IMG/VR virus record: IMGVR_UViG_3300017971_000001
Location: 181,277-245,276 of that record
Direction: 5' to 3' (one strand)
DNA length: 64,000 nucleotides
A program made the translations under genes and the position numbers. Under the pieces are notes generated by a model, which did no database searches, was not told the origin of the DNA, and saw only the letters and a program-made list of their open reading frames with translations. Below, piece by piece: positions 11,921-46,641 of this stretch; position 1 is the stretch's first letter, and each line of letters begins with the position of its first letter.

Positions 11921-12366
11921 TGGATCTCCGGGTGTTCGTTGTCCCACCATTGGACCTGGAATTCCCAGTCGTCGTAGACCAACTCGTCGTCGAGGTCGTA
12001 GGGGAAGCTATTGAAGTCAATGTCCCCGTGTCTTTCAACGTACTCTTTCGCGAATCTGAGCACTTCGCGAGCCTCTCTGGACGAGAAGCCGCCGATCGTG
12101 TTGGCGTAAGCGTAGTCGACGACCTGATAGGCGCGCCCTCCGTCCCAGGACTCGATCTCCTCGATCTCGAAGCGGCCGTCCGGAGGCCGGAAACCTCGCC
12201 GCTCGCGGTAGTCGGGCGGAAGGTAAACGATTCGGCTGCGAACCTGGTGCGCCTTGTCCCATTCGTCCTGACGTTCGAGTTCGAGCGCATACGCTTCTCC
12301 GAGCTCGCGCGATCGATCGCCGGCGAGCCATTGGCGCTCCAAGTTACGCAGGCGCTTGTCGCTCAA
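11917..12366 (-). CDS. Module protein (SDKRLRNLERQWLAGD)
   Basis: TTG start at 12366 overlapping the upstream TGA; acidic C-terminus. Confidence 0.7.
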   Translation of the reverse strand: MSDKRLRNLERQWLAGDRSRELGEAYALELERQDEWDKAHQVRSRIVYLPPDYRERRGFRPPDGRFEIEEIESWDGGRAYQVVDYAYANTIGGFSSREAREVLRFAKEYVERHGDIDFNSFPYDLDDELVYDDWEFQVQWWDNEHPEIQ

Positions 12367-14051
12367 AACAACGAGTCCCCGAGATCGTGCCCTTCCTTCC
12401 AGGCCTGGCGCATGCCTCCCGCGGGCGCCTCGGCAACGATCTCGAGCGTTTCGAGGAGCCCGTCCCGACTCTTGCGCTGAACGCGGATTTCGTCCAGCCA
12501 CTCGAGTTCGAGCCAGGGAAGCGGGATCGGCATGTCGATTTCTACTCGGTCGCCGCTCGGCTCAGGCATGTAGACGCTCCGCGTTACCGGGTCTTCGATT
12601 CGGAAGACGCCGAGCGTGACTTGGTGCTCGTCCGGGCGGACCTGAGAGAGGTCCGGTGCCATTCCTGGCAGTGGGCGAAGGGAGTCGTAGTGACTCGAGC
12701 CAGCGTATCCGTTGGGGAAGACGAAGCGCAGCGTCTCCAGAACGAGATCGCCGGCGCGTGGAATGGGGTGGGACCCCCATGCGCCCCTGCGCTCCATAGC
12801 CGCCATGCCCATGCGGAAACTTCCGGGGGCGAGGTACTCACGAATGGCGAGATCGGGCTCAGGGATCATGCCCTTGCGCACGTCGATCAGGTTCTGCAGC
12901 GCCTTCTCGCGCAGGGCGGCGGGCAGCTGGTCGAAGACGGGCGCGAACTGCGTCGTCAGTCGAGTCAGGCGCTCGATCGCGTCCGGGTCACCTGCCGCGG
13001 CCGCGCGCTCGAGCTCGCGAAGTCGGCGGTCGCCTCGCTCGGGATTGCGTCGCTTGCGACGCCGGCGGCGGAGCGGGTTGTTGCTGTAGGCGTGCTTCTT
13101 GCACTTCTTCTTGTACTTCTCCAGGCGAGCGCACATGGGGCACTCGGCGGGGGTCATGGAGGTAATCTCTCTTCGCTTCGGAGGGAGCGCGCCGGGTCCG
13201 ACGCTCCCGCGACTCTCTCCAAGCCACGCCAGCAGCAACCGCTCCATGACCTCCATGACCTGGTTGACCGAGAGGCCGATCGACGTGCCTCCGAAGCAGG
13301 GCGGGAAATGAACTCCTCCGCAGACTCCGCATTCGTGGTTTGGGTCGAAATATTCGACGTCTACGTCGAGTGGATCAAAGTCTTCGTCGAATCGATCTTC
13401 CTCGAACTCTTCAATGCTGACTTCGTCAATCTTGTTGGCCATGATCAAAGCGGCCCAAACCAGGAGATCGTAAGGCCCGATCGAGACGTAGTAGTGAGGA
13501 GGGATTTCCTGATAGGGCTCGTCCTCGCTGGAAGCGATCTGGATCAGAAGATCGGCCTGCTGGATCACGCCCTCAAAGCTGTTCGCCATGTTGAAGACGT
13601 TTGCGCGGCTCAGCCCTCGACCTGAGAGATAGTGCCGCCCCCAGTCGCTGTCGAGGATCGTAGGAATGACGAGCTCGACGTCCGAGATCGTGTGAAGCTC
13701 GATCATGGGGAGTTCGAACAGGGTCTTGCACCACTGGTTGAATTCTCGATTTCCCCAGGCTGGGTCATGGTCGAAATCGTAAAGCGCTCCTACGGTCCCC
13801 ATGCGGTCAGAGCTCTGAAGCGAGCGGACGGCACTGCGCACGAATTCGATCAGTCGGGCGCCGCCTGCGTCCTGCCCGGCGAGCTCGGCGAGGCTATGAC
13901 TACGGTTCGTTCTTGGGGTCCTGCCCGCGGCGGCGAGGAGTCGCTCGTATTCTTCCTGAGCTTCAGGGTCCCCCAGCGCTGCCGCCCGGCGCACGCGCTC
14001 GATCCGCTCGTCCAGACCTGCATTGCGCCGGTATCCGTAATAGCGCCTCAC
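12363..14051 (-). CDS. Two-module protein with an internal RRNP junction
   Basis: N-terminal RRNAGLDERIERVRRAAALGDPEA and internal RRNPERGDRRLRELERAAAAGDPDA; two CxxC pairs before the junction. Confidence 0.8.
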   Translation of the reverse strand: MRRYYGYRRNAGLDERIERVRRAAALGDPEAQEEYERLLAAAGRTPRTNRSHSLAELAGQDAGGARLIEFVRSAVRSLQSSDRMGTVGALYDFDHDPAWGNREFNQWCKTLFELPMIELHTISDVELVIPTILDSDWGRHYLSGRGLSRANVFNMANSFEGVIQQADLLIQIASSEDEPYQEIPPHYYVSIGPYDLLVWAALIMANKIDEVSIEEFEEDRFDEDFDPLDVDVEYFDPNHECGVCGGVHFPPCFGGTSIGLSVNQVMEVMERLLLAWLGESRGSVGPGALPPKRREITSMTPAECPMCARLEKYKKKCKKHAYSNNPLRRRRRKRRNPERGDRRLRELERAAAAGDPDAIERLTRLTTQFAPVFDQLPAALREKALQNLIDVRKGMIPEPDLAIREYLAPGSFRMGMAAMERRGAWGSHPIPRAGDLVLETLRFVFPNGYAGSSHYDSLRPLPGMAPDLSQVRPDEHQVTLGVFRIEDPVTRSVYMPEPSGDRVEIDMPIPLPWLELEWLDEIRVQRKSRDGLLETLEIVAEAPAGGMRQAWKEGHDLGDSLF

Positions 14052-14885: not shown

Positions 14886-15030
14886 GGTCGTCCTTGGGTT
14901 CGTCGTGAATGAAGGATTGGCAGGAAGGGCACCACAGCAACCACAATCGGGACCCGCTCTCCTTCTCCCAAGCTGGCTTGAGCTCGGGCTTGAATCCGCA
15001 GGCGTCGCAGGGCTCGAAAAGGGGGATCAT
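14872..15030 (-). CDS. 52 aa zinc-ribbon protein (below the ORF-track cutoff)
   Basis: MIPLFEPCDACG..WCPSCQSF; ATGA overlap with the 15027 stop. Confidence 0.65.
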   Translation of the reverse strand: MIPLFEPCDACGFKPELKPAWEKESGSRLWLLWCPSCQSFIHDEPKDDHEQS

Positions 15031-16904
15031 TCTGACTGCGGCCCTAGGAGCTCGAGCGCGATCCGCCGCTTCTCCCTCCCAAGCGGAGACAGCGCGCTTG
15101 CGCCTGCGCTCTCACGAAGGAAGTAGAGGTCGTTGCTCGAGTAGCTTCCCTCACGATCTCCGTAGCGAGCGATCAGGTCTTGATCCCAGCTTCGCGCGCC
15201 CTTGTCCATGCCGGGGTAGTGGTAGAAGTCGTAGAACGACCTCCAGATCCTCCCTGTGAAGCGTTCCTGCTCGGCGGGGTAGTAGGACGTGTGTAGATAC
15301 GTGTAGGCCGGATCTGCGAACTGGTGCGGGCTCCAGAAGGGACCGGGCACGCGATCTCCTTCCTCCAAGATTCCGCGCCGCAGGAGCTCGTCCACGTAGT
15401 GCCGGCGGTCCTCGATCGATCCTGTTTGAGCCGCGCGCTCGAGCTCGCGCAGGCGCTCGTCACCTTTGTTGGGATTTTCGCGCGCCCGTCGGACGACCTG
15501 AATGTTCTTCCAGGGAATCGTGCCCAGGTAGATCGAGGCGACTCCGCCGCATTCGTAGTCGTCGACGTAGCGCTTGCCGTATTTCTTGGCCCCCTCGATC
15601 AGCCAGGCGTCTCCCTCGGGCGTGCCGAAGACGCTCCGGACGTCGAAGTATTCTTCAGGCGCGACGCCGAGGACCCAGTAGCGCTCGTAGGGGTCCATGA
15701 GGTTGTAGTCGGGGACGAGCAGGTCGGGGTCGGGCACCTCGACGCCGAGAAGTCGTCTCGTTTTTGGGTCGGTTGAGTAGTGGCCTCCCCAGCACCAACT
15801 TTCAGAGGTTTCGCTGCCAAGGAATGGATAGACCAGTCCTCGCTCGCGGATCTTGGGAAGCTTCCACTTGGTCGTGCCGTGGTAGTAGTCGAACTCCTCG
15901 AAATCGTCGATCGGATTCTTCCTCGGGCGTCGGTATCCCCGCGGCGGCCAGGTCCCAATGAAGGTCCTGAGTCCAGCTTCAGAGTCGTCCAGCGCTATTT
16001 CGAGATCCATGCCGCTTCCGCGCTCAATGAAGTCAGGGATCTCTCGCAAGGAACCGGCGGAGATCTGGAGGCGGTGATCCTCGGGGTCGAGCTCGAGGAC
16101 CTGGTCCGCCTGCCTGTTCATTCGCTTGCGGATCACGGCGATCGCGTAGGGCGTGAGCGTTCTGCTTTGATTGAGTTCGAAGATCGTGTCCAGGAAGTCC
16201 CGGTTGAGACGAACCTCCTCCAGGAGCTCCTGCGCCTGAAAGGCGTGAAAGTCGGAGCGGGCGGGATTGTTTTGCACGCTCGCGGTGATCCCGAAGTGCT
16301 CCTGCTCAGTTGGGCTGTAGATCCGATACCTTCCGCAGTGGGGGCCGTATCGCTTCCCGCGCAAGCCGACGACCTCCACGCAGGTCTTGTAGTCCAGCGG
16401 CTCCATGAACAGCAGGTCGACGATCCCGATCGGATACCAGGGCGCCGGGTTCGGCCAGTCGAGCATGTAGGTGCGGTTCTCTAGGTAGCGCAGCAGGTCC
16501 TCGTGCGTGTCGACGGTATGGAACCAGAGTTCGTCGTATGAATGAACGACGCCGCGCTCAACGATCAGGAACCGTCCCGAGAGCGCGCTGCGCATGTCCG
16601 TGTTTTCGGGGTCGAAGGCGTCCCGAAAATCGTTCTGGCTGAACTCTGTCGCCCATTCGAGATAGGGAGGCGCGGTTCCGTCCCTGATTTGATCGATCAG
16701 GGTGTAAGCGCGAACGCTGTAGTTGGACTTCTCCCCGACTGCCAGGCGCGCGTAGTGCAGCATGTCCCGCGCCTCATGGTCGCCCTCCTGAGATCGCCTC
16801 TCGAGCTCGCCGTTGCGGTAGAGTTCGATCAAGAGTTCGTCGTAGGCGTCCCGGTCGCCTTCGGCTGCGAGTCGCTCAAGCCTGCGAATCCTCGGGTCGC
16901 TCAT
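15027..16904 (-). CDS. NP-segmented multi-module protein containing an ADP-ribosyltransferase-like domain
   Basis: Starts MSDPRIRRLERLAAEGD; after RKNP comes YYHGTTKWKLPKIRERGL..SIYLGTIPWKNI; after RENP a second GDERLRELERAA module. Confidence 0.78.
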   Translation of the reverse strand: MSDPRIRRLERLAAEGDRDAYDELLIELYRNGELERRSQEGDHEARDMLHYARLAVGEKSNYSVRAYTLIDQIRDGTAPPYLEWATEFSQNDFRDAFDPENTDMRSALSGRFLIVERGVVHSYDELWFHTVDTHEDLLRYLENRTYMLDWPNPAPWYPIGIVDLLFMEPLDYKTCVEVVGLRGKRYGPHCGRYRIYSPTEQEHFGITASVQNNPARSDFHAFQAQELLEEVRLNRDFLDTIFELNQSRTLTPYAIAVIRKRMNRQADQVLELDPEDHRLQISAGSLREIPDFIERGSGMDLEIALDDSEAGLRTFIGTWPPRGYRRPRKNPIDDFEEFDYYHGTTKWKLPKIRERGLVYPFLGSETSESWCWGGHYSTDPKTRRLLGVEVPDPDLLVPDYNLMDPYERYWVLGVAPEEYFDVRSVFGTPEGDAWLIEGAKKYGKRYVDDYECGGVASIYLGTIPWKNIQVVRRARENPNKGDERLRELERAAQTGSIEDRRHYVDELLRRGILEEGDRVPGPFWSPHQFADPAYTYLHTSYYPAEQERFTGRIWRSFYDFYHYPGMDKGARSWDQDLIARYGDREGSYSSNDLYFLRESAGASALSPLGREKRRIALELLGPQSE

Positions 16905-17380
16905 GCGTAGTCGAGCTCCGTCACGGGCCAGCTTGCGTAGCACGCATTGCAGCTGATCCAGTCAGCCGGCCCTGCGTCGTCCGCGCTCTCGAACAGGCCA
17001 GTGACGTAGAGCACTCCGTCTTCGGCCTCACCCGCTTCTGCGAAGCGTAGTTCGTAGCTGCAGAGGCTGAAGCCCGCGCCTTCGATCTCGTGACCGCGGG
17101 GGCACTCGGTCACACTCTTGTGATTAGGGAACCAGCCAGCATGCGGCTCACCTCGCTGCTGCCAGGGTCGCGTGGCGTTGGCGAGCAGTAGATTCCGAGC
17201 TATGCGGGAGCAGACTTCAGGGGGCAGGGCGCCCTGCAGCCAGCGAATGTTCGCCTCGTCAGCCATGAACTCGGGGGTGAGGGCTCCTGTCCGCAGGAGC
17301 TCTTGGTACAGAAGGGGTCCTGCCTCGGGGTCGCCCTCGGCCACCCGGCGCTCCAGTTCTCGTAAGCGTCGATCGCTCAT
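16901..17380 (-). CDS. Module protein with C-terminal zinc ribbon (paralog A)
   Basis: MSDRRLRELERRVAEGDPEA; CPRGH..CNACYASWP. Confidence 0.8.
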   Translation of the reverse strand: MSDRRLRELERRVAEGDPEAGPLLYQELLRTGALTPEFMADEANIRWLQGALPPEVCSRIARNLLLANATRPWQQRGEPHAGWFPNHKSVTECPRGHEIEGAGFSLCSYELRFAEAGEAEDGVLYVTGLFESADDAGPADWISCNACYASWPVTELDYA

Positions 17381-17868
17381 ATGTCCCACTCAATCTCGAT
17401 CTGATTGATCGGCCACGAGGCGTAGCAAGTTCGGCAGGTTAGGTGGTCTGTGAGCGAAGTCGATTCGCCAATGATTCGATCGGAGCCCACGCTGACGTAT
17501 TCGCCGTCGTCGTCAGTGACCGTGTCCGTTGCAAACGAAGTTGCTTCGTAGGCGTCCAGTGTGAACGTGTGAAGCTGGTGCGAGTGCCCCCGCGGGCACG
17601 TGAGCGGACTGTGGTGATCTGGGAACCAGCCCCCAAGATTCTCCCCCTCAAAGAGCATGGTCGAGACTGCCAGAAGCGCCGTTTCTGCGATTTGTCCCAG
17701 GAGTTCGGCGGGCATTGCAGCTTGGAGCAGTCGGACGTTGTTGTGATCCGCAATGAATTCCGGCGTGATCATTCCAGCGCGAGCGAGCTCTTGGTACAGG
17801 AGGAGCCCGGCCTCGGGGTCGCCCTCGGCCACCCGTCGCTCCAGTTCTCGTAAGCGTCGATCGCTCAT
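17377..17868 (-). CDS. Module protein with C-terminal zinc ribbon (paralog B)
   Basis: Same N-terminus; CPRGH..CRTCYASWP; 5' 60 nt nearly identical to paralog A. Confidence 0.8.
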   Translation of the reverse strand: MSDRRLRELERRVAEGDPEAGLLLYQELARAGMITPEFIADHNNVRLLQAAMPAELLGQIAETALLAVSTMLFEGENLGGWFPDHHSPLTCPRGHSHQLHTFTLDAYEATSFATDTVTDDDGEYVSVGSDRIIGESTSLTDHLTCRTCYASWPINQIEIEWDI

Positions 17869-21448: not shown

Positions 21449-21706
21449 CTATTCGTCCTCGTCCCAGTCAGACCCGTTCCAGGGCAGGCAGCCGTCTTCG
21501 ATCAGGCTGACAACGATCATGCAGAACAGCATGGGTAGAAACGCGACGACGGTGTAGAAGGCCAGCAGGGCGTTGATCCAGAACCCGCCCTCCTGGCCTC
21601 TCCAGTAGATCTCACGATAGACGTCGTGCATGGCGGACCCGGCCAGCCAGCAAACGAACCAGGCCGCTTCAACGAATCCGGTAAGGAGTGTTCGCAGCAG
21701 GTCCAC
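21449..21706 (-). CDS. Small two-helix membrane protein
   Basis: Two hydrophobic stretches and an acidic tail; overlaps the end of the upstream ORF. Confidence 0.5.
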   Translation of the reverse strand: MDLLRTLLTGFVEAAWFVCWLAGSAMHDVYREIYWRGQEGGFWINALLAFYTVVAFLPMLFCMIVVSLIEDGCLPWNGSDWDEDE

Positions 21707-23219
21707 CGGGCCTCCAGGGTGACGTCGGGTCGAACAGGATCCAATCGACAGCGGGTTTGGTCAGCGTGTAGAGGAAGTCTTCGTAGAACGGATCGTAGGG
21801 CCTGCGCCGGCTCGGGCCGATCATGAGCGCGTGGTCGAGCGCAAGCGGCAGTCGATCCGCAGGCCAGCCGTACGACCAGCCGAGGCAGTTCCCCTCATAT
21901 TCGTTCGAGATTCCGGCGCCGATCGCGTAGAGGAGCTCGCGCATGGCTTCAAAAGCCGCGCCGCGGACAGGGTTGATATGAAGGGAGTGGAGCTCTCGGA
22001 GTTGCTGCTGCCAGCGACTTCTGCGCTGTTCTGCAAGTCCTGGCACATGCCTGTTGAAGTTTGTCCACCCCCAGAACACCTCGGAGCGCCTGGGCCATTC
22101 TTCGTCAACAACGGGAATGAGCTCGAGCAACTCCTCGACGCGATCGCAGATTTTCCCTGAGAGCTTGTAGTAATCAGGGTCGTCGTGGGGCGTGGCGAGA
22201 AGCTCTGCGTATTCTTCTCCGATCGTAGAGAGCTCGACTGGCAGGTAGCGGCGGATCGCGCGCGCCAGGCCGACGATCAGGTTGCGAGTGATTCGCCCGG
22301 ACCCATGCATGCCGCCGAGGTCTTTGTTGTTGGTGAGGGTGCTCAGGAAGCTTCTCAGCGACTTGCCGCCCATGTTCAGACGCCAAGCACCGTAGGTCTG
22401 CGGTGTCTCTTCGGCGGCAGCAGGAAAGAGCAGCGCGTGCGCAGCTGCGTATCCCATGGGCGAGATCTCGCCAGCGCGCAGGAGGTTGAGTAGGTGTGCC
22501 TGCTCTTCTTCGATCGTCTCGAACGAGCGCTCGAGCTTTCGCGCTGGTTCGTCGGGGTTCGATCGCACGCGCGGTCCTGCGGTGCCGAGAATGTAGCGAG
22601 CGAGAAGCTGCCGCTGCGCCGCGCGGACGCGCTCCCTCAGGCCATGGTCGATTGTCTGGGCAGTGTCAATGTGGTAGGCCGCGCCCTGCTGGGATCTCAT
22701 GGTGCGGAGCACAGCGGCGGGACTACCTTCTCGCTCGACCGCCTCCACGGCTTCGATAATGGTGTAGATCGCGAGTCGCCCTCGCAGGTCGTAACCCGGA
22801 AGCTGGGTCCATGAGCCCTGGAGTTCCTCAGCAGACGCCAGCAGTGCTTTTCTGAGGCATTCCAGCGACCCGTTCTCCGCGTATTCGCGCATGATCTTGA
22901 TCGCCTTGAAGATCTTGTTCGCGAACGCCCCGACGTGATCCTCGAACATTTCCAGAGTGGACTCGGCGATATCGGCGACGTAGGAGGCTCTTTGCTGGGG
23001 CGCTAGCAGGTCCCCGACCGCACGCTGAATGTCGTAATCCCTAAAGAGGGCCGTCGCGAACGTGTTCGGTTCTTCGATCTCGGCCGCGGCGGGGTGGCCC
23101 AGCAAGGCTGCGACGCGCAAGCGGCGCTCGCTCAGGTCCCCGGCGCGCAAGCGAAGCAAGAGCGCCTCGGCCGAGTCGGGATCGAGTTCGCGCAGTCGCT
23201 CTCGAAGCCGCCGGTCCAC
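21669..23219 (-). CDS. Two-module protein with internal RSNP junction; Imm5-like helical domain
   Basis: LLLRLRAGDLSERRLRVAALLGHPAA and, after VRSNP, LLNLLRAGEISPMGYAAAHALL. Confidence 0.75.
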   Translation of the reverse strand: MDRRLRERLRELDPDSAEALLLRLRAGDLSERRLRVAALLGHPAAAEIEEPNTFATALFRDYDIQRAVGDLLAPQQRASYVADIAESTLEMFEDHVGAFANKIFKAIKIMREYAENGSLECLRKALLASAEELQGSWTQLPGYDLRGRLAIYTIIEAVEAVEREGSPAAVLRTMRSQQGAAYHIDTAQTIDHGLRERVRAAQRQLLARYILGTAGPRVRSNPDEPARKLERSFETIEEEQAHLLNLLRAGEISPMGYAAAHALLFPAAAEETPQTYGAWRLNMGGKSLRSFLSTLTNNKDLGGMHGSGRITRNLIVGLARAIRRYLPVELSTIGEEYAELLATPHDDPDYYKLSGKICDRVEELLELIPVVDEEWPRRSEVFWGWTNFNRHVPGLAEQRRSRWQQQLRELHSLHINPVRGAAFEAMRELLYAIGAGISNEYEGNCLGWSYGWPADRLPLALDHALMIGPSRRRPYDPFYEDFLYTLTKPAVDWILFDPTSPWRPGGPAANTPYRIR

Positions 23220-23221
23220 AG

Positions 23222-23998
23222 CTAGACCTCAGGTTCGATCGTAGGCCAGACCTCGGACAACAAGCAGCGCGCGAGGTGACCGTCCGCCCAGGCGAGTTCT
23301 TCGTTGTAGGTGCCCCAGGCAGCCCGACGCGTTTCTTCGTTGACGTTGTTCTGATTGGCGCCGTGGCCCGGCCCTCCGTATTCAAGGTTCTCTTCGTCGA
23401 AGAAGCGCTGCCGGTAACAGCCCGCCATTTTCAGCGGCACGGCCTTGAGGTGTTCGTGAGGCTGGCGCCGGCAGCCGATCGAAACGTAGTAAGCGAGCTC
23501 GATCGCTTGGCTGTAGGCTGAGAGGTAAATCCGCGTCACCCTTCGATACTCTGCGCTCTCGCGGAGCTCCTCTCCCGCGACGTCGGGCGGAGTCAGGGTG
23601 GAGCCGTTGACCCATGCCCTTGCAGCTTCGATTGCTCTGTAGGCGAGCTCGGGCAGCCCTGCGATATGAAGGGAATCGCTTTCGACAGCGAACTCGTTGA
23701 TCGAGCGCGTCGCACAATCGGCTGCGAAGAGGACGGCTTCCCGCTGACCGATCGCGGCCTTGTTGAGGATCTCGACGGCGAACGATCCGTCTGAGAACAC
23801 AGGCTCCGGGGTCATGTCGGGCGGGGGAGGGAGAACCTGCTGGGCAATCGGGTCACCGAGATAGCTCGCTAGGGAGACGTTTTCAGGTGCCAGCTGACCA
23901 GCGCGAATGCGCGCGATCAGATTGGCGACTGGGTCGCCCCCGCGGCGAGATCGCCGAATGCCTTCGTCCGCGTTTCTTCGGTAGAGCTTCCGGCGCAC
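23222..23998 (-). CDS. Module protein with Imm5-like helical domain
   Basis: RRNADEG..IARIRAGQLAPENVSLASYLGDP; VLFAADCA..AIEAARAWVNG. Confidence 0.72.
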   Translation of the reverse strand: MRRKLYRRNADEGIRRSRRGGDPVANLIARIRAGQLAPENVSLASYLGDPIAQQVLPPPPDMTPEPVFSDGSFAVEILNKAAIGQREAVLFAADCATRSINEFAVESDSLHIAGLPELAYRAIEAARAWVNGSTLTPPDVAGEELRESAEYRRVTRIYLSAYSQAIELAYYVSIGCRRQPHEHLKAVPLKMAGCYRQRFFDEENLEYGGPGHGANQNNVNEETRRAAWGTYNEELAWADGHLARCLLSEVWPTIEPEV

Positions 23999-24487: not shown

Positions 24488-24991
24488 CTAGAAGCCGGGC
24501 GGGTGGGCAATGTCGTGCAGCTTGTAGGGAGGCAGCACGAGGCTACCGCCCTTGGTCTTGCCGCCGAGGAGCTTGGCGGCGACGGCGGGGTTGCTCCGCG
24601 TCTTCCGCTTCTTGCTCGTCTTCTTCTTGGCCTTCTTGCGCGTCGTCTTCTTGCGGGCGGTCTTCTTCTTGGTCGTGCGCTTCTTGGTCGTGCGCTTCTT
24701 CTTGGCCTTCTTGCGCGTCGTCTTCTTCTTGGTCTTCTTCTTGGTCGTCCGCTTCTTGCGCGTCGTCTTCTTCTTGGTCTTCTTCTTGGTTGTGCGCTTC
24801 TTCTTGGCCTTCTTGCGCGTCGTCTTCTTGCGCGTCGTCTTCTTGCGCGTCGTCTTCTTGCGCGTCGTCTTCTTGCGGGCAGTCTTCTTGCGGGCAGTCT
24901 TCTTGGTGGTGCGCTTCTTGGTCGTGCGCTTCTTGGTGGTGCGCTTCTTGGTGGTGCGCTTCTTGGTCGTGCGCTTCTTACGGGCGGCCAT
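24488..24991 (-). CDS. Histone H1/Hc2-like Lys-rich DNA-binding protein
   Basis: About 25 pentapeptide KK(R/K)TT, RKKTT and KKTAR repeats, then RSNP and a short C-terminal segment. Confidence 0.85.
   Translation of the reverse strand: MAARKKRTTKKRTTKKRTTKKRTTKKRTTKKTARKKTARKKTTRKKTTRKKTTRKKTTRKKAKKKRTTKKKTKKKTTRKKRTTKKKTKKKTTRKKAKKKRTTKKRTTKKKTARKKTTRKKAKKKTSKKRKTRSNPAVAAKLLGGKTKGGSLVLPPYKLHDIAHPPGF
24595..24985. repeat. Degenerate 15-nt tandem repeats encoding the Lys-rich tract
   Basis: Units such as cttcttggtcgtgcg and cttcttgcgcgtcgt. Confidence 0.85.
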
Positions 24992-24993
24992 GG

Positions 24994-25368
24994 CTACTTG
25001 TCCTCCAGGAGTTCGTCGTTTTCGTCGCCAGGAAGCTCGATCGGCTTCAGGTTGAGTTGCTTGGGGTCAGGGCCTTCGTCCAGCTGGAACTGGATCGAGT
25101 GCCAGGAGAATCGGTTGGCGTGCAGCGCGTTGAGCAGCTTCTGGGTCAGCGTCTTGACCCTGGGGGGCGTCGCGGCGAGGTCGGCGCTGGTGATTCCAGC
25201 AACGCCGCCGGCGCTTTCTCCGGCGACGACCTTCGAAGCGAGTTCGTGGTAACGCTCGCTTGCGGCGACGCCAACCGCGGTCGTGTCGATCACGGCCTCG
25301 GTCGCTACAGACCAGCACCCGCTGGTGAATGCCGTCAGCGCGATCAGCAACATGGTTCGTTGGAGCAT
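24994..25368 (-). CDS. Small lipoprotein
   Basis: MLQRTMLLIALTAFTSGC lipobox signal; upstream ORF extension is probably spurious. Confidence 0.7.
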   Translation of the reverse strand: MLQRTMLLIALTAFTSGCWSVATEAVIDTTAVGVAASERYHELASKVVAGESAGGVAGITSADLAATPPRVKTLTQKLLNALHANRFSWHSIQFQLDEGPDPKQLNLKPIELPGDENDELLEDK

Positions 25369-39533: not shown

Positions 39534-41039
39534 ATGCTCAGCTTCAACGAGCTCCAGGGCTTTGCCCAGGCCCACTCTGGTGACTACCGGTTCGGGCTTG
39601 ACGGCCGGAAGAAGGCGTGCTGCAGCAGCTGCGCGCACAACGGTCCGTGTGAAGGCGACAGCCACCAGCACGGGCTCGGGCGTCCGATCGATATCAACGA
39701 CTGGAAGAAGTGGATTCGTCACGAAGAAGCCGACACCATGCCGCCTGGGTTCCCTCCCCCCGCCCGTAGCTTCAGCCCGGCCTTCTCGGGACTCCGTGGC
39801 GCTACGGTCCTTACAGGCGAAGGGGATATGGACGATCCTCTGGACGCGCCACCGCTCGGGTACAAGTACGTCCAGACCACCAAGCCAAACACGACGGTCA
39901 TGGCGAAGCCCATGGGCGTTGTTCCGAAGCAGAGGCGGCGCGACGTCACGCGCATGATCGAGGAGCTCGAGTTCCTCGCGGCGACCCCCGGCGTCCACCC
40001 TCGCGCCCTCGCTTCCAAGATCTGGCAGGCGCGCAAGGCGCTCATGGAGAGCCAGGACTGGAGCTACGCCAGCTACAGCAATCCGCGCATGCGCTACGAC
40101 AGCAAGCGCGATCTGGAGGCGCGCCTTGCCTCGGTCGAGCGAGTCCTGGGTGTGGGCGACGTCAGCCCCAAGACCTTCGCGTTCTTCTACGGCATGGGCG
40201 GTCTGGGCAGGTGGCAGGGCCAGCAGGATCCGATCAAGAAGCTCGCGCAGTGCATTCAGGGGGCGATCTGCTTCCCGAAGGGCTACTGCTGCCCGTCTGG
40301 GACGCACTTCGACGAGCCCTACTACGACGACCCGCTCTACTTCGATCAGGGCTATCCCGAATACCCTGAGTACGGATACCCGGAGACCGGCGATCCTCGC
40401 CTTCCGCCGCCCATGGGCGACCCGCGTCAACCCCCTCCCTTCTTCGAGGAGACGTGGGGCGAGCCGCGTCGTCCGGGTGAGACCTATATCCCCGGACCCA
40501 AGTTGACCGAGCGCGGCCCCGTTACCTCGATCCCGGGCGCTCCGATCACGAGCATTCCTGGCGGATCGATCGGACCCGCCGGCGCCATTTCCACCGGCGG
40601 TGGAAAGATCGGACCTGCGAACGCTGGCCTGATCGCTGCGGGCGGGGTCGCTTCCGGTGCCGCGGCATCCATGCCCAACTCGGGCGCCGGTCCTGGCTCG
40701 ATCCTTCCTGGCGGAACGAAGACTTCGACTTCGACGGGCGGATCGCTTTCGGTGGACGAGGCGGTCAAGGCAGTCTCCATGCCGAATCAAAAGAAGTCCG
40801 TTCAGCTGCTCAAGCCAGGCACGGGAATCCTTTCGCGCCCGTATGTCGGCGCGCCCGAGCTCGTGCAGACGGGCCCTTCGGCTCAGGACTTTCAAGAAGC
40901 AGAGCGTCAGCGCCGCGCCGCTCGTCCCGGTTGGGGCGGAGGCGACGGCGGCGGAAGCATGGTCTCCCTGGGAGGCCTCTCTGCCCTGCAGCACAGCATG
41001 AACGCGGCCCGCATTGCGGCTCGCCGCCGGCGGAGGTGA
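39534..41039 (+). CDS. Cys/Pro/Gly-rich putative virion protein
   Basis: ATG 39534; CCSSCAHNGPC, MGGLG, CIQGAICFPKGYCC; Arg tail. Confidence 0.75.
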   Translation: MLSFNELQGFAQAHSGDYRFGLDGRKKACCSSCAHNGPCEGDSHQHGLGRPIDINDWKKWIRHEEADTMPPGFPPPARSFSPAFSGLRGATVLTGEGDMDDPLDAPPLGYKYVQTTKPNTTVMAKPMGVVPKQRRRDVTRMIEELEFLAATPGVHPRALASKIWQARKALMESQDWSYASYSNPRMRYDSKRDLEARLASVERVLGVGDVSPKTFAFFYGMGGLGRWQGQQDPIKKLAQCIQGAICFPKGYCCPSGTHFDEPYYDDPLYFDQGYPEYPEYGYPETGDPRLPPPMGDPRQPPPFFEETWGEPRRPGETYIPGPKLTERGPVTSIPGAPITSIPGGSIGPAGAISTGGGKIGPANAGLIAAGGVASGAAASMPNSGAGPGSILPGGTKTSTSTGGSLSVDEAVKAVSMPNQKKSVQLLKPGTGILSRPYVGAPELVQTGPSAQDFQEAERQRRAARPGWGGGDGGGSMVSLGGLSALQHSMNAARIAARRRRR

Positions 41040-41047
41040 GAAGAGAT

Positions 41048-42079
41048 ATGAAGCGACGCATTCGTAAGAACCCTTGGTTCAGCCCTCCGGCCATGCAGTA
41101 CGTGGCGCGGTTTACTCCGCCCCTCATGCTCAACCCGCCTCGGAGCAATCCGCGGGTCTACGGCGACTACGGCCCGCCGGCGCTGCCCCCACGGCGCAAC
41201 CCTCGGGTCTATGGTGACTACGGCCCGCCGGCGCTGCCCCCGCGGCGCAACCCTTCCCAGGTCTACTCGATCAGCTGCGACGGCGAGCACGTCGACTTGA
41301 TCCGCGCGACCTCGCCCGGCAAGGCTCGCTCGATCGCCTCCAAGCGTCACGGCATTCCCTTTCTCGAGCTCGACGTCATGGCGACCGGGGCGGCGAACCC
41401 TCCCCGCGCTCGCAAGATCGACCTCAAGGGAGACTTCCCGCTCATGAACAAGCGCCACCGACGGCGCCCGCGTTACTCGACCTATCGGACTGAAGACGTC
41501 GAGCGGCACATGCGCTACCCGCGCCGGCGTCGCTTCGATCCCGAGCCGGTCGGATACCGGGATAACCCCTGGGTCACCATGTACGGCCCGCGGCACACCG
41601 GCCCCTTCCAGCGCAAGCGCGACGCGCGGGACTTCGCTGACACGCGTCGGGGGCGCTACGGCGAGCACCACTCGGTTCACCGGCTCTACTCGCCGGGCGG
41701 GCAGTATGGTCGTCGCTCGCCGCATGTTCCGATCAAGCGTCGGCGCAACCCGGCCTACGGCGACTACAGTCCGCCTGCGGCCCCCTACGGCATGAATCCC
41801 CGGGGCCGGGGCGGGAAGCCTTCGCTTCACAGGGCGGCCGCCGCTGCTTCTCGTCGCGCTGCTCGGAAGATCGACGAGATCCTCAGCCAGATCGCCGAGA
41901 TTCCCAGTCTCACGATCCGTGATATCGAAGACGTGGTCGACGGCCTCCTCCACGTTCACGCTGGCCGAATTCTGCGCAAGCACAAGCTCTCGAGGTCGCG
42001 TCACAGCGATATCGAGCAAATGATCTCGGACGCGCTTTCGTATCGCAGCGAGGCCTACAACGAGATCATTCTCCGCTAA
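41048..42079 (+). CDS. Arg-rich NP-repeat protein (putative genome-condensing core protein)
   Basis: Nine NP dipeptides including RKNP, RSNP and three RRNP. Confidence 0.8.
   Translation: MKRRIRKNPWFSPPAMQYVARFTPPLMLNPPRSNPRVYGDYGPPALPPRRNPRVYGDYGPPALPPRRNPSQVYSISCDGEHVDLIRATSPGKARSIASKRHGIPFLELDVMATGAANPPRARKIDLKGDFPLMNKRHRRRPRYSTYRTEDVERHMRYPRRRRFDPEPVGYRDNPWVTMYGPRHTGPFQRKRDARDFADTRRGRYGEHHSVHRLYSPGGQYGRRSPHVPIKRRRNPAYGDYSPPAAPYGMNPRGRGGKPSLHRAAAAASRRAARKIDEILSQIAEIPSLTIRDIEDVVDGLLHVHAGRILRKHKLSRSRHSDIEQMISDALSYRSEAYNEIILR
41147..41254 (+). repeat. 51-nt tandem duplication (NPRVYGDYGPPALPPRR x2)
   Basis: NP codons at 41147, 41198 and 41249; a third degenerate copy near 41748. Confidence 0.85.
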
Positions 42080-42142
42080 TGGATCGGGTCGTCCGCCGAG
42101 CAGTTCGCTACTTGCTCCTAGAGAGCCTTGAGGGGTAAAACA

Positions 42143-43492
42143 ATGCACCGACGCGAATACAACCCCCGCTACTCGTTCTCCGAGCCGCGCCCAAACCCTG
42201 ATTGGCACCCGGGCGGTGGCATGCGGATCGGGGGTCGGTATCGCCCTGGCAGCGGACGCTTCCATGCGCACCGCGGATCGGGCTATCGCCACGGCGGCGG
42301 CCGTCGCTACGACGGCGAGTACTACCCCGGCGGTGGCTACTACCCCCAAGCCAATCCTGCGGTCGCCGGTATTCAGATCGGCGACAAGGTCATGCCGGCC
42401 TCGCGCTTCCATGCGCGCCGCTGCCCCTTCGTGCGCGGCCGCGTCGTCGACCTGAAGCACAAGAAGTACGGCGACCTCGCTCGCGTCGAGACAGAAGACG
42501 GTCGGATCGTGACCGTCACGCTCGACACGATCAAGCGCTGCGGCATGCGCACGCGCAGCAACCCGCGGCGTGTCCGTCGCAACTGGGTCCCCAGTCACTG
42601 GAACGAGTGCGAGTCCTGCGGCAACCGGTGCTATCCGCACGAGCGCCTGTGCGTCTACTGCGAGCAGGCTGAGTTCGATCGCCTGCCGGGTCATATGACC
42701 GAGCTCAAGCGTTGCCCGAAGTGCGACCGCTTCGCATGCCTCGGCGGGCGTCACTGCAAGCCTCGGCCTCGCGGTTCTGGCCCCGGCCCCTACCTCGAGA
42801 ACCCTTACGCCTCCAGGGCGAAGGCGAAGGAACTCGCGCGCCTGGTCGAGTCCAAGCCAGGAATCCGCAAGATCGCTCGCCGGACCTACAGCCACGGCAC
42901 GGTCCCCCGCGAGGTCGAGTGCGAACTCGAGCCCCTCGGGCCGTCCATGCTGCTCGGTAGTCGTCGCTACGGGCGGACCAAGGGTGGCATGGTCGACTCC
43001 TACGCCAAGGAGTTCGACTTCCCTGCCCCCAACGAAGAGGAGCGGAAGTTCGTTGTCTGCAAGGGCGCGAACGAAATCGAGGCTGTCGCTGACGCATTGC
43101 CTCCGGGCCGCGGCTTCAAGAAGCGGCTTGAGTCCGCGCTCTCGACGAAGCGCTTCCAGGGCAAGCTCCCCGTGCAGAAGCGAATCGATCGAATCATGAA
43201 GGGCGGCATGCTGACGCAGCGTCAGACGACTGCGTTCTTGAAAAGCACGGACGCTGATCGCCTCTACGAGTTGGCGGAGCTCAAGCGCCGGGTCGACCGC
43301 GTCTTCTACCCGAGTATGCGGAAGCTGCTCATGCACGAAGAGGTTTCGGAGAAGCTGAGGCCCGCCCCGGCCCGCAAGAAGCGTTCGACCAAGAAGAAGG
43401 CTGGCAAGAAGGTCAGCAAGAAGAAGGTCGCCGCCGCTAAGAAGAAGGCCAAGAAGAAGACGACCAAGAAGCGTCGCCGGCGGGGTGCTTAA
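42143..43492 (+). CDS. Basic NP-segmented protein with SH3/KOW-like and Cys-finger modules and Lys tail
   Basis: NP junctions separate a Gly/Tyr region, IQIGDKV..GRVV..VTV, CESC/CVYC/CPKC and a KK-rich tail. Confidence 0.78.
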   Translation: MHRREYNPRYSFSEPRPNPDWHPGGGMRIGGRYRPGSGRFHAHRGSGYRHGGGRRYDGEYYPGGGYYPQANPAVAGIQIGDKVMPASRFHARRCPFVRGRVVDLKHKKYGDLARVETEDGRIVTVTLDTIKRCGMRTRSNPRRVRRNWVPSHWNECESCGNRCYPHERLCVYCEQAEFDRLPGHMTELKRCPKCDRFACLGGRHCKPRPRGSGPGPYLENPYASRAKAKELARLVESKPGIRKIARRTYSHGTVPREVECELEPLGPSMLLGSRRYGRTKGGMVDSYAKEFDFPAPNEEERKFVVCKGANEIEAVADALPPGRGFKKRLESALSTKRFQGKLPVQKRIDRIMKGGMLTQRQTTAFLKSTDADRLYELAELKRRVDRVFYPSMRKLLMHEEVSEKLRPAPARKKRSTKKKAGKKVSKKKVAAAKKKAKKKTTKKRRRRGA

Positions 43493-44775
43493 TGGCCGCT
43501 CGCAAGAAGCGCGCCAAGCGCGCCAAGAAGAAGGTTCCGGGGCCGCGTCGGTATCACATTGAGCGCGCTATGGGCTGGGTCGATCACGGACTCGCTCACC
43601 CGGGCGAGCACGAGCACGCTTTGCGCGAGGCGCACGATCACCTGGTCCATGCCAAGCAGGCAAGGCGGAACCCTCGCCGTCTACCCGTGCGCAGCAACCC
43701 CATGCTGGCAGTTGTTGGCAATCCGCCTCGGCGTCGTCGCGTTCGCCGCAACCCCATGCTCGCGATCGTCGGGAATCCGCACGAAGAGGAAATGACCCCG
43801 GGCGCCATGCGCCGCCGGATCACCGAACTCAAGCTCGAGCTTGACGACGCGAAGTACTTCAAGCACTCGCCTATGCGGATCGCAGGACTCGAAGACGAGA
43901 TCGCCGAACTCGAAGACGCGCTTGACGCTGCAGAGGAACAGTTCGAGCGTAGGTCGCGCGCTGGACTTTCTCGCTCTCGCGTTGAAGACGAGCGCCGCCG
44001 TGAGCGCGAGCGCTACATGCGCGATCGCCGGCGCAACCCGCGTCCTGAAGTTCACCCGCTCGCCTACGAAGCGCGCCGCCGTTACCACGAAGACCTCATG
44101 GCAGGCCATGGAGACGCCGCTGAATACTGGCGCGGCCAGGCCGGGGCGTTCTTCACGGACGCGGTTCACCCCGACTACATGCGCGAGATCTACGAACTCG
44201 AGCAGCGCGAACTCGAACGCCGGAACCGAAACGCGACTGGCAAGCGCGCCAAGAAAAAGTCTGGCCGCAAGGGTGGCAAGAAGTCCAAAAAGCAAGTTGC
44301 AGGGCCAGGCGGACGGGATAGCTTGAAGAAAGAGGGCAGGAAGGTTCGCAAGAATCGGACTGCAGGGAAGTCCAAGAAGGCGAAGCCAAAACTCAAGCGC
44401 TACACGCTCGAGGAAGCCAGGAAGAAGTTCGAAGGATTCGACGAAGCGCTGAAGGCCTACAAGCGTTTTCACAAAGCGAATCCGAGCCACGTCGACGTCT
44501 ACGAAATTGACGACGGCAAGCCTGGCAAAACGGTTGACCGAGTTCATGCAGCACTCCACCGGACAGTCGAAACCAACTACCTCGTGCCTGACGGCTGGGA
44601 GTCCAACAAGAATGGCTCCCTCTGGAAGCACGAGCACGTTGAAGGCTTCAGCCTCGACAACCCCGTTGGCGAACCTGATCCGGAAGACTTCCCGCTCGAA
44701 GTGCTCGACCCAGCAACCGGCACGACTCGCAAGTTCGGCGGTCGCTTCCGCGTCACGACGTGGTGGTACGACTGA
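43492..44775 (+). CDS. Basic NP-repeat protein
   Basis: Eight NP; duplicated R(S/R)NPMLA(V/I)VGNP; TAATG overlap. Confidence 0.8.
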   Translation: MAARKKRAKRAKKKVPGPRRYHIERAMGWVDHGLAHPGEHEHALREAHDHLVHAKQARRNPRRLPVRSNPMLAVVGNPPRRRRVRRNPMLAIVGNPHEEEMTPGAMRRRITELKLELDDAKYFKHSPMRIAGLEDEIAELEDALDAAEEQFERRSRAGLSRSRVEDERRRERERYMRDRRRNPRPEVHPLAYEARRRYHEDLMAGHGDAAEYWRGQAGAFFTDAVHPDYMREIYELEQRELERRNRNATGKRAKKKSGRKGGKKSKKQVAGPGGRDSLKKEGRKVRKNRTAGKSKKAKPKLKRYTLEEARKKFEGFDEALKAYKRFHKANPSHVDVYEIDDGKPGKTVDRVHAALHRTVETNYLVPDGWESNKNGSLWKHEHVEGFSLDNPVGEPDPEDFPLEVLDPATGTTRKFGGRFRVTTWWYD

Positions 44776-44787
44776 GCGAGGTGCGCT

Positions 44788-46641
44788 GTGTATCTGATCC
44801 CTGTTCTCAATCCGCCGCCCAGCGCCATGCCCCTCGCTGGGACCAAGACGAAGCGCAAGCCCAAGCGGGCCGCGCCCAAGAAGACCAAGTCGGCCGGGAG
44901 GAAGTCCGTGGCTAAGAAGAAGGTTCGCAAGAACAGCAGCCGCAAGCGCACGAGCAGCTACTCCGGTGGCCGCGCTCAGCGCAAGCGCTACCCCAGCGGC
45001 AAGCGCCGCAACCTGACCTGGGTCGAGGCTGCGCGATCGTCTGGCGCGGTCTACACGCCGAACTCGCTCATGACCAAGAAGGACGGCCGCGGTCGGCTGA
45101 AGTTCGTCCCGGTCACGAGCGGCAAGGTCGGTAAGCCCATGTCGAAGCAGGACGCGCTCGCGGCCAAGCGCCCGGTCGTCGGCTTCCTACCCAAGTGGCT
45201 GATCGACTTCTGGTACGACTCGGGCGCTGCGGACATGAAGACCGCGCGTCAGCAGAAGAGCAAGAAGTACAAGGACGCGGTCCAGTACTTCAACGCGGCC
45301 CAGAAGGCGCTCGCCGAGCAGCGGAAGAAGCGCGGCACCAGCTGGAAGCGCGCGACCCAGTACAAGACCAAGGGCCGCGGCAAGAACAAGAAGAAGGTCC
45401 GGGTCCCGGACTTCGAGATCCTGGACGACGGCTCGGTCAAGTTCCGATCGGGCCGTGGTCCCAAGACGTCAATCACCCTGTTTCGAGGCTTTGCTCCGTC
45501 GGAGGTGCAACAGCGGCACCTCATTGAAGGCGGTTTCGCGGGCAAGGCTGGACCTGGAGGAGGTCGCGTGAAGCTGAACCGAAAGCGGAAGCGCCGGGCG
45601 AAGGTTCGCAAGAACCCGGCGCGTAAGAAGAAGGCCGTGAGCAAGAACAAGCCACGGCGTAGCAAGAAGAAGACGAAGAGTCGGAAGAAGAGCCGCCGTC
45701 GCGCGGTCCTGAACAACCGGCCCAAGTCCAAGCGTCGGAAGAAGGCGACGAAGCGCAAGGCCGCGCGCCGCAAGAGCACGAAGCGTCGGAAGAATCCTGC
45801 GCGCAGCCGCAAGCGGCGCGTGCGGAAGAACCCGGCTCGCAAGTCGCACTCGCGCAAGCGTCGTCGTCGCAAGAGCAGCGCTCTGAGCCGGGTTCGCCAG
45901 AACCCCATGGGCGCGACCAAGAAGAACCCCATGGGCGCGCTGAAGCAGTACCTCGACAAGCTGCAGACCGCTTCGCCCTACGTCACTGGCGCTCACCTCG
46001 TGATCGGCATGGGCGTCAGCGGGCTCTTCTGCGGCGGTCTCCGTCAGTTCCCCGTCGTCGGGCGGATCTTCAGCCTTCGTGGTCGTTACCTGGGCGCCGC
46101 CGGCCGTTTCGCCGGTTGCCTCGGCGCGGCTTCGCTGGCTGGCCTGACCGGAACCCTGCTCGAGCGCACCCTGGGCAAGAACGTCAAGTTCCTCCAGAAC
46201 GCTGGCGGCAACTTCTTCGTGGCTGGTGTCGCCCTCGCGGTCGGCAACCTCCTCCTCGAGCTCATTCCCGGCGCCTCGTCGATCCTGCCTGGGATCAGCA
46301 ACCCCCGCGGCATGCGCACCATGCGGCACATGTCCATGGCGGCTCCGGCCGGCGAAGAGGGCATGGGCAGCTACGGCAGCAGCGTCCTGAGTCCCGAGGA
46401 CCTGGTCGCTGGCGAGTCGAGTGCCCGTCTGACCAACGAGTTCCACGGCATGAGCGACTTCCTGGAGCTCAGCGGCATGGGCTCGTCGGGCGGTCAGCCG
46501 ATTCCGATCGAGGACCTGCGCGGCTACCCCGGCTGGTATGGCGGTGGCAACTCGATCTCGGGCATGGGCGACTACATGGAGCTCAACCCGACCGCTCCCC
46601 TCGTCACCGACGGGTTCAACCCCGGCACCGAGAACTTCTAG
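44788..46641 (+). CDS. Very basic NP-repeat protein with hydrophobic segment and C-terminal G(M)G motifs (core-precursor-like)
   Basis: Three RKNPAR, RQNPMG, KKNPMG; LSGMG and ISGMG near the C-terminus. Confidence 0.8.
   Translation: MYLIPVLNPPPSAMPLAGTKTKRKPKRAAPKKTKSAGRKSVAKKKVRKNSSRKRTSSYSGGRAQRKRYPSGKRRNLTWVEAARSSGAVYTPNSLMTKKDGRGRLKFVPVTSGKVGKPMSKQDALAAKRPVVGFLPKWLIDFWYDSGAADMKTARQQKSKKYKDAVQYFNAAQKALAEQRKKRGTSWKRATQYKTKGRGKNKKKVRVPDFEILDDGSVKFRSGRGPKTSITLFRGFAPSEVQQRHLIEGGFAGKAGPGGGRVKLNRKRKRRAKVRKNPARKKKAVSKNKPRRSKKKTKSRKKSRRRAVLNNRPKSKRRKKATKRKAARRKSTKRRKNPARSRKRRVRKNPARKSHSRKRRRRKSSALSRVRQNPMGATKKNPMGALKQYLDKLQTASPYVTGAHLVIGMGVSGLFCGGLRQFPVVGRIFSLRGRYLGAAGRFAGCLGAASLAGLTGTLLERTLGKNVKFLQNAGGNFFVAGVALAVGNLLLELIPGASSILPGISNPRGMRTMRHMSMAAPAGEEGMGSYGSSVLSPEDLVAGESSARLTNEFHGMSDFLELSGMGSSGGQPIPIEDLRGYPGWYGGGNSISGMGDYMELNPTAPLVTDGFNPGTENF

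Follow-up and report, generated by a model that had tools for sequence, protein, structure and literature searches.

Asn-Pro seams coincide with module boundaries in a multi-module jumbo phage protein carrying a predicted ADP-ribosyltransferase-superfamily domain

Introduction

What marks the points at which one module of a composite phage protein ends and the next begins? The question is raised by a 625-residue protein encoded on the minus strand of IMG/VR virus record IMGVR_UViG_3300017971_000001, within a stretch of 64,000 nucleotides that constitutes the final 64 kb of the 245,276-bp record and that is referred to as the window throughout. A preliminary description had divided this protein into four segments joined at the motifs QNNP, RKNP and RENP, had assigned one of them as an ADP-ribosyltransferase (ART), and had regarded the shared Asn-Pro (NP) dipeptide as either a site of proteolytic processing or a seam of recombination. 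Our analysis has confirmed that the segment boundaries coincide with these motifs, and it has revealed that modules are exchanged at them in related phages, that the dipeptide is enriched throughout the proteome of the phage, and that the third module is predicted to adopt a fold of the ART superfamily.

The virus record has a GC content of 63%, contains direct terminal repeats (DTR) and is present in metagenomes from sediment and seawater. Its collagen-like tail-fibre genes, its phage helicases, the DTR and a CheckV completeness of 100% identify the source, as judged from the sequence, as a tailed jumbo phage of marine sediment with a genome of 245 kb. Residue numbers refer to the 625-residue protein and nucleotide positions to the window, unless they are given for the genome (G000).

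Results

Module organization of the protein

A model of the whole protein was obtained with AlphaFold2 (AF2) from a composite alignment of module-wise homologues and shows a mean predicted local distance difference test (pLDDT) score of 68. In this model, confident blocks comprising residues 1-180, 215-318, 340-473 and 480 onward alternate with stretches of low confidence (pLDDT < 50) at residues 183-218, 317-335 and 476-481. The sequence contains four NP dipeptides, compared to about 1.0 predicted from its composition, and three of them, the ones named above, are each located at the end of a low-confidence linker just ahead of the following block, with the fourth, in WPNP, being found inside the folded module 1. 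The blocks of the AF2 model agree with boundaries that were defined independently by homology, which upholds the proposed segmentation (Table 1). This also applies to the suggested succession of elements, with the H-G-T motif of the ART-like domain beginning 11 residues past RKNP and the RLRELER leader of module 4 beginning 4 residues past RENP. The sequence YRNG, which directly follows the N-terminal hairpin, is a possible degenerate seam.

Table 1. Positions in the window of the modules, seams and key residues of the 625-residue protein and of neighbouring genes with related architecture (HMM, hidden Markov model)
Feature	Positions	Strand	Description
Whole open reading frame	15027..16904	-	625 residues and stop; multi-module, 'polyvalent-like' protein
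Leader hairpin A, residues 1-30 ('MSDPRIRRLERLAAEGD...')	16815..16904	-	Leader HMM; AF2 helices H4-15 and H18-30
Module 1, residues 31-197	16314..16814	-	Truncated leader B and alpha/beta domain; homology, AF2
WPNP, NP 152-153	16446..16451	-	Intradomain loop of module 1; not conserved in homologues; not a seam
Seam 1, N213-P214 (QNNP)	16263..16268	-	AF2; start of P0003 ('MRHNP') aligns here
Module 2, residues 215-318	15951..16262	-	Helical; 68% identical to first half of P0003
Seam 2, N330-P331 (RKNP)	15912..15917	-	ART cassette indel (versus L007), left border
Module 3, residues 332-473	15486..15911	-	ART-superfamily NAD+-binding-type domain; fold and sequence searches
H342-G343-T344 motif	15873..15881	-	NAD+ contact motif in Tpt1 and diphtheria toxin
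G374	15783..15785	-	Arg/Lys in all homologues; aligned to Arg133/Arg134 region of A. pernix Tpt1 (PMC10622864)
V455	15540..15542	-	Start of penultimate strand; Glu in 5/6 homologues, the sixth with Glu one residue earlier
Seam 3, N477-P478 (RENP)	15471..15476	-	Right border of the ART cassette indel
Module 4, residues 479-625	15030..15470	-	Leader hairpin ('GDERLRELERAAQTGS...') and poorly modelled domain; 52-71% identical to second half of P0003
Two-module neighbour	12363..14051	-	Seam 'NNP...RRNP' at 13041-13079, then leader
Two-module neighbour	21669..23219	-	Seam 'RSNP' at 22554-22559, then repeat of its own N-terminal leader
Two tandem stand-alone leader and Zn-ribbon genes	16901..17868	-	162 and 163 residues

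Exchange of modules in related phages

An exhaustive phmmer search of 1.84 billion representative proteins with the 625-residue protein as query has retrieved only 16 matches, which relate to it module by module. Residues 31-196 have counterparts in P0002 and P0008-P0012, located C-terminally, N-terminally or in the middle of these proteins, residues 339-471 match P0004-P0007, P0013 and P0016 at very different positions, and residues 214-326 together with residues 479-621 match a single protein of 265 residues, P0003. The latter originates from a close relative of the phage, whose contig (L007) is syntenic with the locus, as reflected in identities of 77% for a helix-turn-helix (HTH) protein, 94% for a 293-residue protein and 66% for a leader/Zn-ribbon protein. 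The orthologue on this contig consists of modules 2 and 4 only and is devoid of module 1 and of the ART module. It begins with MRHNP, aligned to QNNP, and joins the two modules at the sequence YQRNP, which is directly followed by GGDERLRELER. In an alignment of the DNA, the ART module appears as an insertion of 450 nucleotides, which directly follows AAT CCG and whose final part consists of AAT CCC and two further codons. The homologues of the ART module in turn start with NP[T/I]YYHGT, and another NP follows at its end.

In the relative carrying P0003, module 1 is found as the last module of P0002, where it is preceded by KQYNP. The orthologue of P0002 in the present phage (genome positions 22080-23243) ends precisely at the location of this seam, and it carries an extra module of 160 residues between two other NPs, thus constituting a second NP-bounded cassette indel. 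Since a seam of P0002 corresponds to a stop in the present phage and the stand-alone 162-residue gene beside the locus recurs as the C-terminal cassette in P0014, the boundaries of genes in one phage equate to seams in another. The view of the seams as points of module exchange is thus borne out, with whole cassettes being gained or lost between two NPs. The partners of the exchanged modules are diverse: in its homologues, the ART module is combined with a GNAT acetyltransferase, DUF5591, Zn-ribbons and, in the distant P0016 of 1399 residues, a PcfJ-like domain, and module 1 with GNAT, XRE-HTH and L5 gp82-like modules. No relatives of the ART module were found in IMG/VR or GTDB genomes.

The open reading frame (ORF) itself is intact, and contigs from two independent runs are identical to the gene with zero differences. 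Reads at the locus gave no sign of population variants that differ in the presence of cassettes; X4 and X5 contain the same phage, not relatives, at low depth.

Enrichment of the dipeptide and its association with a leader

The relationship between NP and exchange was quantified in an all-against-all BLAST comparison of the ORFs of this genome, four related contigs and the homologues, where a breakpoint was defined as an internal endpoint of a high-scoring segment pair. Such endpoints are located at most 12 residues from an NP in 104 of 238 cases, compared to 30 expected (3.5x), with ratios of 0.9-1.0 for the control dipeptides DP, SP, GP, NG and QP. The dipeptide is also generally abundant. 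In 282 non-overlapping ORFs of the phage, NP is found 188 times compared to 104 times in within-protein shuffles (z 8.8), and the extended motif [RK][RK]NP 25 times compared to 1.8 expected (z 16), an enrichment that is shared by the homologue set and by contig L006. At the seams, NP is invariant while neighbouring residues vary, and it is kept 2-13 residues from many N-termini (MRHNP, MRNP, MRRRNP). At some sites, the Pro is replaced by Ala or Gly (RRNAG, RRNAD, RRRNG).

A second recurrent element is the leader, a helical hairpin of about 35 residues with the pattern D-x-R-L-R-E-L-E-R-x-A-A-x-G-D..., whose profile detects about 30 ORFs in this genome at E < 0.01 and about 40 at E < 1, and 57 copies in 39 proteins if relatives are included. 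Among 34 apparently internal leaders, 28 are positioned just past an NP, five are N-terminal copies in proteins whose starts were mis-called, and the remaining one is the second, truncated hairpin of the 625-residue protein. Truly internal leaders thus follow an NP in 28 of 28 cases, and the leader is found solely at the N-terminus of a protein or directly after NP. It has no match in Pfam, NCBIfam or PHROGs, with TIGR02996 and Sel1/TPR families remaining below threshold, and feature and structure searches in the ESM-Atlas have provided weak TPR/Sel1/HEAT leads only. A search of its profile against a set of 5.8 billion proteins, in which a length filter restricts the candidates for such a short element, has retrieved only this phage and close relatives. 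Genes carrying the leader are clustered at 17-33 kb (-), 46-50 kb (+) and 124-142 kb (-) of G000 and at 10.8-24 kb (-) of the window.

The highest density of NP is observed elsewhere, in four adjacent plus-strand ORFs at window positions 40931-46641, which encode very basic proteins of 382, 454, 427 and 617 residues with 5-9 NPs each, sometimes only 8-17 residues apart. These proteins contain tandem 'PPRRNPRVYGDYGPPAL' units and 'RRNPRRLPVRSNPMLAVVGNPPRRRRVRRNPMLAIVGNP' and have no family matches. One of them is protamine-like and rich in Lys and Arg, with repeated K/R-K/R-NPAR preceding a Gly-rich hydrophobic segment. The arrays suggest that basic-Asn-Pro is a general short motif of the phage, of which the module seams are one use.

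The conservation of NP concerns the protein rather than the DNA. The codons at 16 seams include AAT and AAC for Asn, all four codons for Pro and many for Arg. AAT is commoner before Pro codons than elsewhere, but the same preference for a T-ending codon is found for Asp, Tyr, Phe, Ile, Cys and Ser and the bias thus reflects a codon-pair effect. Since the seam codons vary, NP is kept by selection on the polypeptide.

Structural properties of the ART module

Module 3 alone was predicted with a pLDDT of 90.8. In a Foldseek search of this model against the PDB, the top matches all belong to the ART superfamily (probability 1.0), with KptA/Tpt1 ranking first (E 2e-4) and with RES toxins, diphtheria toxin (DT), cholera toxin (CT) and exotoxin A among the further matches. 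Clusters of the AlphaFold database matched by the module include DarT/DUF4433, DUF3990, Tpt1 and PARP, and those of the Atlas are phage clusters labelled DarT/PARP and Tpt1. With VIA-align, Tpt1 was matched with Z 9.6-10.9 and a root-mean-square deviation of about 2 Å, the best match showing 28% identity over 86 residues, and the matched part (chain residues 86-181) corresponds to its NAD+ lobe. The respective values for CT, LT, PT, DT, Arr and RES are Z 6-7.6. The TM-scores of 0.40-0.50 are low and thus characterize the module as divergent. Profile searches against PDB sequences have identified weak similarity to Tpt1 (E 0.03-0.04) and to diphtheria toxin (E 0.4) via YHGT and W-G-x-x-Y-S-x-D, and one member of the family touches Pfam PARP, with no match of the ART module to ADPrib_exo_Tox or related Pfam families. 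The assignment of the third segment to the ARTs in the preliminary description is thus supported at the level of the predicted fold.

ARTs are characterized by a split beta-sheet NAD+-binding fold, by H-G-[ST] or Arg at the end of strand 1 (position 1), by an aromatic residue or His at position 2 and by Glu at position 3, which in the Tpt1 clade is a hydrophobic residue. Their catalytic Glu residues sit at the start of the penultimate strand. In an alignment of seven sequences, consisting of the target and six homologues, Y341-H342-G343-T344 is invariant in 7/7 and aligns to H96-G-T of Tpt1 and H21-G-T of DT. Y376-S377, aligned to Y54-S55 of DT, is equally invariant, and Y359 is Tyr or His in the homologues. 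In Tpt1 of A. pernix and P. horikoshii, the His and Thr of the HGT motif hold the adenosine ribose and the backbone of the Gly holds the nicotinamide amide (PMC10622864). The catalytic Arg-His-Arg-Arg tetrad of the same enzyme is mostly contained in an N-terminal RNA lobe, with its fourth residue being Arg116 in A. pernix (PMC10622864). This lobe, and with it three of the four catalytic residues, is absent in module 3, which starts at the seam and has no Pfam PTS_2-RNA match; as for the fourth, the 'rgrrl' loop of Tpt1 is aligned by HMMER to a gap in the profile of the family. In light of the missing RNA lobe and the deleted loop, the module resembles an ART NAD+ lobe and not a Tpt1 enzyme. 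According to its model, it is a domain with an ART-superfamily fold and an intact Y-H-G-T and Y-S core, whose nearest relative is the NAD+ lobe of Tpt1/KptA.

Outside of this core, the target differs from all homologues at W347 (Glu), K348 (His), G374 (Arg/Lys), T382 (Asp), V425 (Glu/Asp) and W465 (Pro), where the residues of the homologues are given in brackets. Since it has lost R374, E455 and the acidic residues of three further conserved positions, this copy of the ART module is probably weakened or re-purposed, as judged from alignment and secondary structure and not from superposition. Given its predicted fold, we infer that the module would bind NAD+ or an ADP-ribose derivative. By analogy, its relationship to Tpt1 and DarT and the RNA-repair neighbourhood of P0007 point to nucleic acid rather than protein as a candidate substrate.

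The locus of P0007 (L020/L021), which belongs to an AT-richer phage, contains this ART and GNAT homologue near RtcB, whose gene is interrupted by that of an HNH protein, and near an RNA ligase and a cREC domain, in addition to a class-Ib tRNA synthetase and a nucleotidyltransferase, and thus shows a neighbourhood of the RNA-repair type. RNA ligase, RtcB and cREC partners are absent from the present genome, in a search whose positive control worked.

Related architecture of neighbouring proteins and genomic context

The preliminary description had suggested the same logic for the proteins encoded at 12363 and 21669, and it indeed recurs in both. In the former, RRNP and the following leader are conserved in its orthologue P0018, and the identity to this protein changes at the NP seam from about 85-90% in the first module to about 55% in the second, indicating module-specific evolutionary rates. 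In the latter, the segment past RSNP repeats the N-terminus of the same protein (E 0.002), and the stand-alone gene at 23222..23998 is a paralogue of its first module. The tandem paralogues of 162 and 163 residues are 49% identical and near-identical in the DNA of their leaders; contigs break in this region at 17349-17381, where the depth doubles.

The stop-to-stop frame of the target extends from 15027 to 16943 (-), and its start is likely the ATG at 16904. This codon forms an ATGA overlap with the stop of the preceding gene and provides an N-terminus (MSD) found in many paralogues. The gene is part of a minus-strand cluster of leader-bearing genes and HTH regulators at 10.8-26.5 kb of the window. 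This cluster is divergent from a plus-strand block without annotatable genes, which continues into the tail-fibre genes at the start of the record and which probably comprises structural genes. Two large collagen-like tail-fibre genes at 1265-6225 (+) of G000 are located just past the end of the window on the circular map. Searches of Pfam, PHROGs and NCBIfam with the target, its neighbours and the large ORFs have retrieved no match for the target or the leader.

Additional features of the genome include a tRNA-Leu (anticodon aag) at 4338-4412 (+) of the window, about 19 copies of a 15-nucleotide tandem repeat inside overlapping ORFs at 24601-24996, and LAGLIDADG_3 domains inside a Mom-like ORF (window 47571-49205, +) and inside both large helicase ORFs (G000 143401-146787, -, and 167223-170627, +), where the insertions probably represent inteins. 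The word GATG/CATC is nearly purged from G000, with 16 occurrences in 245 kb compared to about 1855 expected (observed/expected 0.009), three of which remain in the window (40666, 51522 and 57909). GTAC (0.40) and CTAG (0.43) rank next in avoidance. The close relatives L001, L007 and L006 share the purge of GATG/CATC, L003, L019 and L020 do not, and it looks like the avoidance of a host defence targeting an asymmetric 4-bp word.

Discussion

In this study, we have investigated the architecture of a phage protein whose module boundaries coincide with a conserved dipeptide. We consider it reasonably probable that it is a cassette-built protein of tethered modules with a conserved start-of-module signal, and thus a form of the phage 'polyvalent proteins' that is specific to this lineage. 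Its independently folding modules are strung on Arg-rich linkers predicted to be disordered, each of them beginning at a (basic)-x-Asn-Pro element. In related phages they are found interchangeably as stand-alone genes and fused cassettes, with whole cassettes gained or lost exactly between two NPs. The modules would act as separate functional units that are held together by their tethers. The basic-Asn-Pro element would serve as a signal for the start of a module, which may insulate the module that follows or be recognised by a partner, and the role of the protein would be that of the polyvalent type, in host take-over or counter-defence. Several observations weigh against this interpretation. 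Classical hallmarks of polyvalent proteins, namely a packaging anchor (MuF), an embedded peptidase and a very large size, are absent; a fold class is recognisable in only one of the four modules (module 3); and the substitutions in the ART module, as seen in the alignment, make its activity uncertain. Moreover, the Asn at the seams is never replaced by Ser, Thr or Asp, and this strictness together with the retention of NP near N-termini exceeds the need of a passive linker, which hints at specific recognition or chemistry.

Such chemistry is the core of an alternative that we regard as rather unlikely. In a true polyprotein, every seam would be severed between its Asn and Pro, be it through cyclisation of the Asn or through a protease of phage or host that has escaped recognition, thereby releasing modules with an N-terminal Pro that mimic the stand-alone 'MSD...' proteins. 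The restriction of the leader to true N-termini and to positions right after NP, the invariance of NP in a drifting environment, its retention 2-13 residues from many N-termini, as would be expected for short propeptides, and the fact that genes are separated in one phage where a seam is located in another are all in line with cleavage, and scission between Asn and Pro has precedents in the NPTH sequence of FlhB/YscU and in reovirus mu1 (PMC3207474) and in RsgI (PMC10328401). In contrast, peptidases of the families S78, C13, C14 and MPTase were not detected in the genome, in a search whose positive control worked and where most of the genome is without family match. The seams are predicted to be disordered, whereas known self-cleaving N-P sites reside in folded turns, and the Pro is replaceable by Ala or Gly. 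Finally, cleavage of the proteins encoded at 41048-46641 of the window, whose NPs are 8-17 residues apart, would generate tiny peptides, and such tandem arrays imply that NP is not only a cleavage site.

A more far-reaching reading, which we consider unlikely, is that a clade of sediment jumbo phages possesses a processing system not described so far that recognises or cleaves basic-x-Asn-Pro, with the RLRELER hairpin tagging about 40 proteins as cargo or for docking. If true, many accessory proteins including an NAD+-using module would be made from shuffled cassette polyproteins, released with an N-terminal Pro and all sent to one place, for example the virion or a compartment built by the phage.

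More doubtful still is the idea that basic-Asn-Pro acts as a nucleic-acid-binding or turn motif, which by analogy to SPKK would tether proteins to phage DNA and possibly permit their co-packaging and delivery. SPKK-type turns occur in basic chromatin proteins. The motif is indeed densest in the very basic, protamine-like proteins beside presumed structural genes (window 40931-46641), and linkers upstream of seams are rich in Arg, as in the sequence RRRRRKRRNP of the protein at 12363. However, many seams show little basic context (QNNP, ASFNP, YTPNP, LGLNP), the association with virions is without evidence, and the link to module boundaries would be left unexplained. The previously suggested injection of the ART into the host has equally gained no support, as no MuF, MPTase-PolyVal, recognisable prohead protease or packaging signature was found in the genome in searches with a working positive control, and as the gene resides in a cluster with HTH regulators.

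Hardly tenable, finally, is a DNA recombination site, either site-specific or a microhomology seam of the sequence AAYCCN, since the Asn, Pro and Arg codons of the seams vary freely, the preference for AAT before Pro is shared with other codons, five nucleotides are too few for specificity and exchange via leader DNA leaves modules without a leader, such as the ART, unexplained, even if AATCC flanks the ART indel on both sides, leaders of different genes share up to about 20 identical nucleotides (family D4) and contigs break at a duplicated leader. The recombination seam of the preliminary description, if understood as a DNA site, is thus already largely refuted, while homologous exchange via leader DNA may still help the shuffling. 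Other explanations of the motif were rejected as well: AATCC as a DNA signal because of the codon-pair effect, read-through of a ribosome-binding site (AGGAGG to RR) because the Arg codons of the seams are CGN, a 2A-like NPGP skip because of the wrong context and the bacterial host, and helix N-capping as sole reason because NP also precedes beta-strands (NP-TYYHGT) and its Asn is never Ser, Thr or Asp.

Returning to the interpretation as a cassette-built protein, its closest counterparts are the polyvalent proteins of phages and plasmids, where ART domains are the commonest modifying enzyme (PMC5512222, PMC9503650). As in this class, several unrelated effector-type domains are united in one phage polypeptide (PMC5512222), the ART is joined to GNAT, HTH and other modules in homologues, and the PcfJ-like domain of P0016 is typical of it. 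Unlike polyvalent proteins, those described here are smaller, with 2-6 modules, and they lack a MuF/portal anchor and an MPTase or papain-like peptidase. We have found neither a shared leader nor an invariant NP at seams described for the class, in an account that does use terms of cleavage and processing (PMC5512222).

The ART module itself finds its best structural match in Tpt1/KptA (Z 10.9), where Y-H-G-T and the next helix align, but it differs in the absence of the N-terminal RNA lobe and the loop of the fourth Arg (PMC10622864). With Alt of phage T4, to which it had been compared, it shares the property of being a phage-encoded ART-superfamily domain that might act early in infection. 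T4 Alt is an ART of the R-S-E type, whose packaging depends on a capsid-targeting sequence and which the prohead protease trims. In contrast, module 3 is of the H type, with an H-G-T motif and Tpt1 and DarT as nearest folds, and toxin ARTs of the R-S-E type reach only Z 6-7, and the comparison is thus not sustained. A short conserved peptide at the point of exchange of variable modules is also familiar from the cassettes of polymorphic toxins such as VENN in CdiA. Conservation of the VENN pre-toxin seam extends to the DNA, and exchange there is confined to the C-terminal toxin, whereas the seam described here is conserved as peptide only, is located ahead of every module and shows no link to immunity genes. 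Asparagine peptide lyases, as another point of comparison, contain an invariant Asn-Pro where the chain can be divided (PMC3207474, PMC10328401), but their Asn is strained inside a folded domain, unlike the NPs of the present protein, which are found in linkers predicted to be disordered (pLDDT < 50). Of the preliminary interpretation, the segmentation, the coincidence of NP and seams, the ART fold and the exchange of modules have thus persisted, whereas the likeness to Alt, the injection and the seam at the level of DNA have not.

Collectively, our analysis has added to the known repertoire of multi-effector phage proteins an invariant Asn-Pro seam, a shared leader and a proteome-wide enrichment of the dipeptide, which are the novel features of this system. 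A single dipeptide marks the start of modules, is enriched across the proteome of a 245-kb phage and is coupled to the leader of dozens of genes, and there is thus now a concrete and testable handle on how modules are delimited, exchanged and possibly separated in such proteins. The known ART domains of phages are extended by a stand-alone Tpt1-like NAD+ lobe, and the work bears on the question of how an uncultured lineage of jumbo phages builds and diversifies its accessory arsenal.

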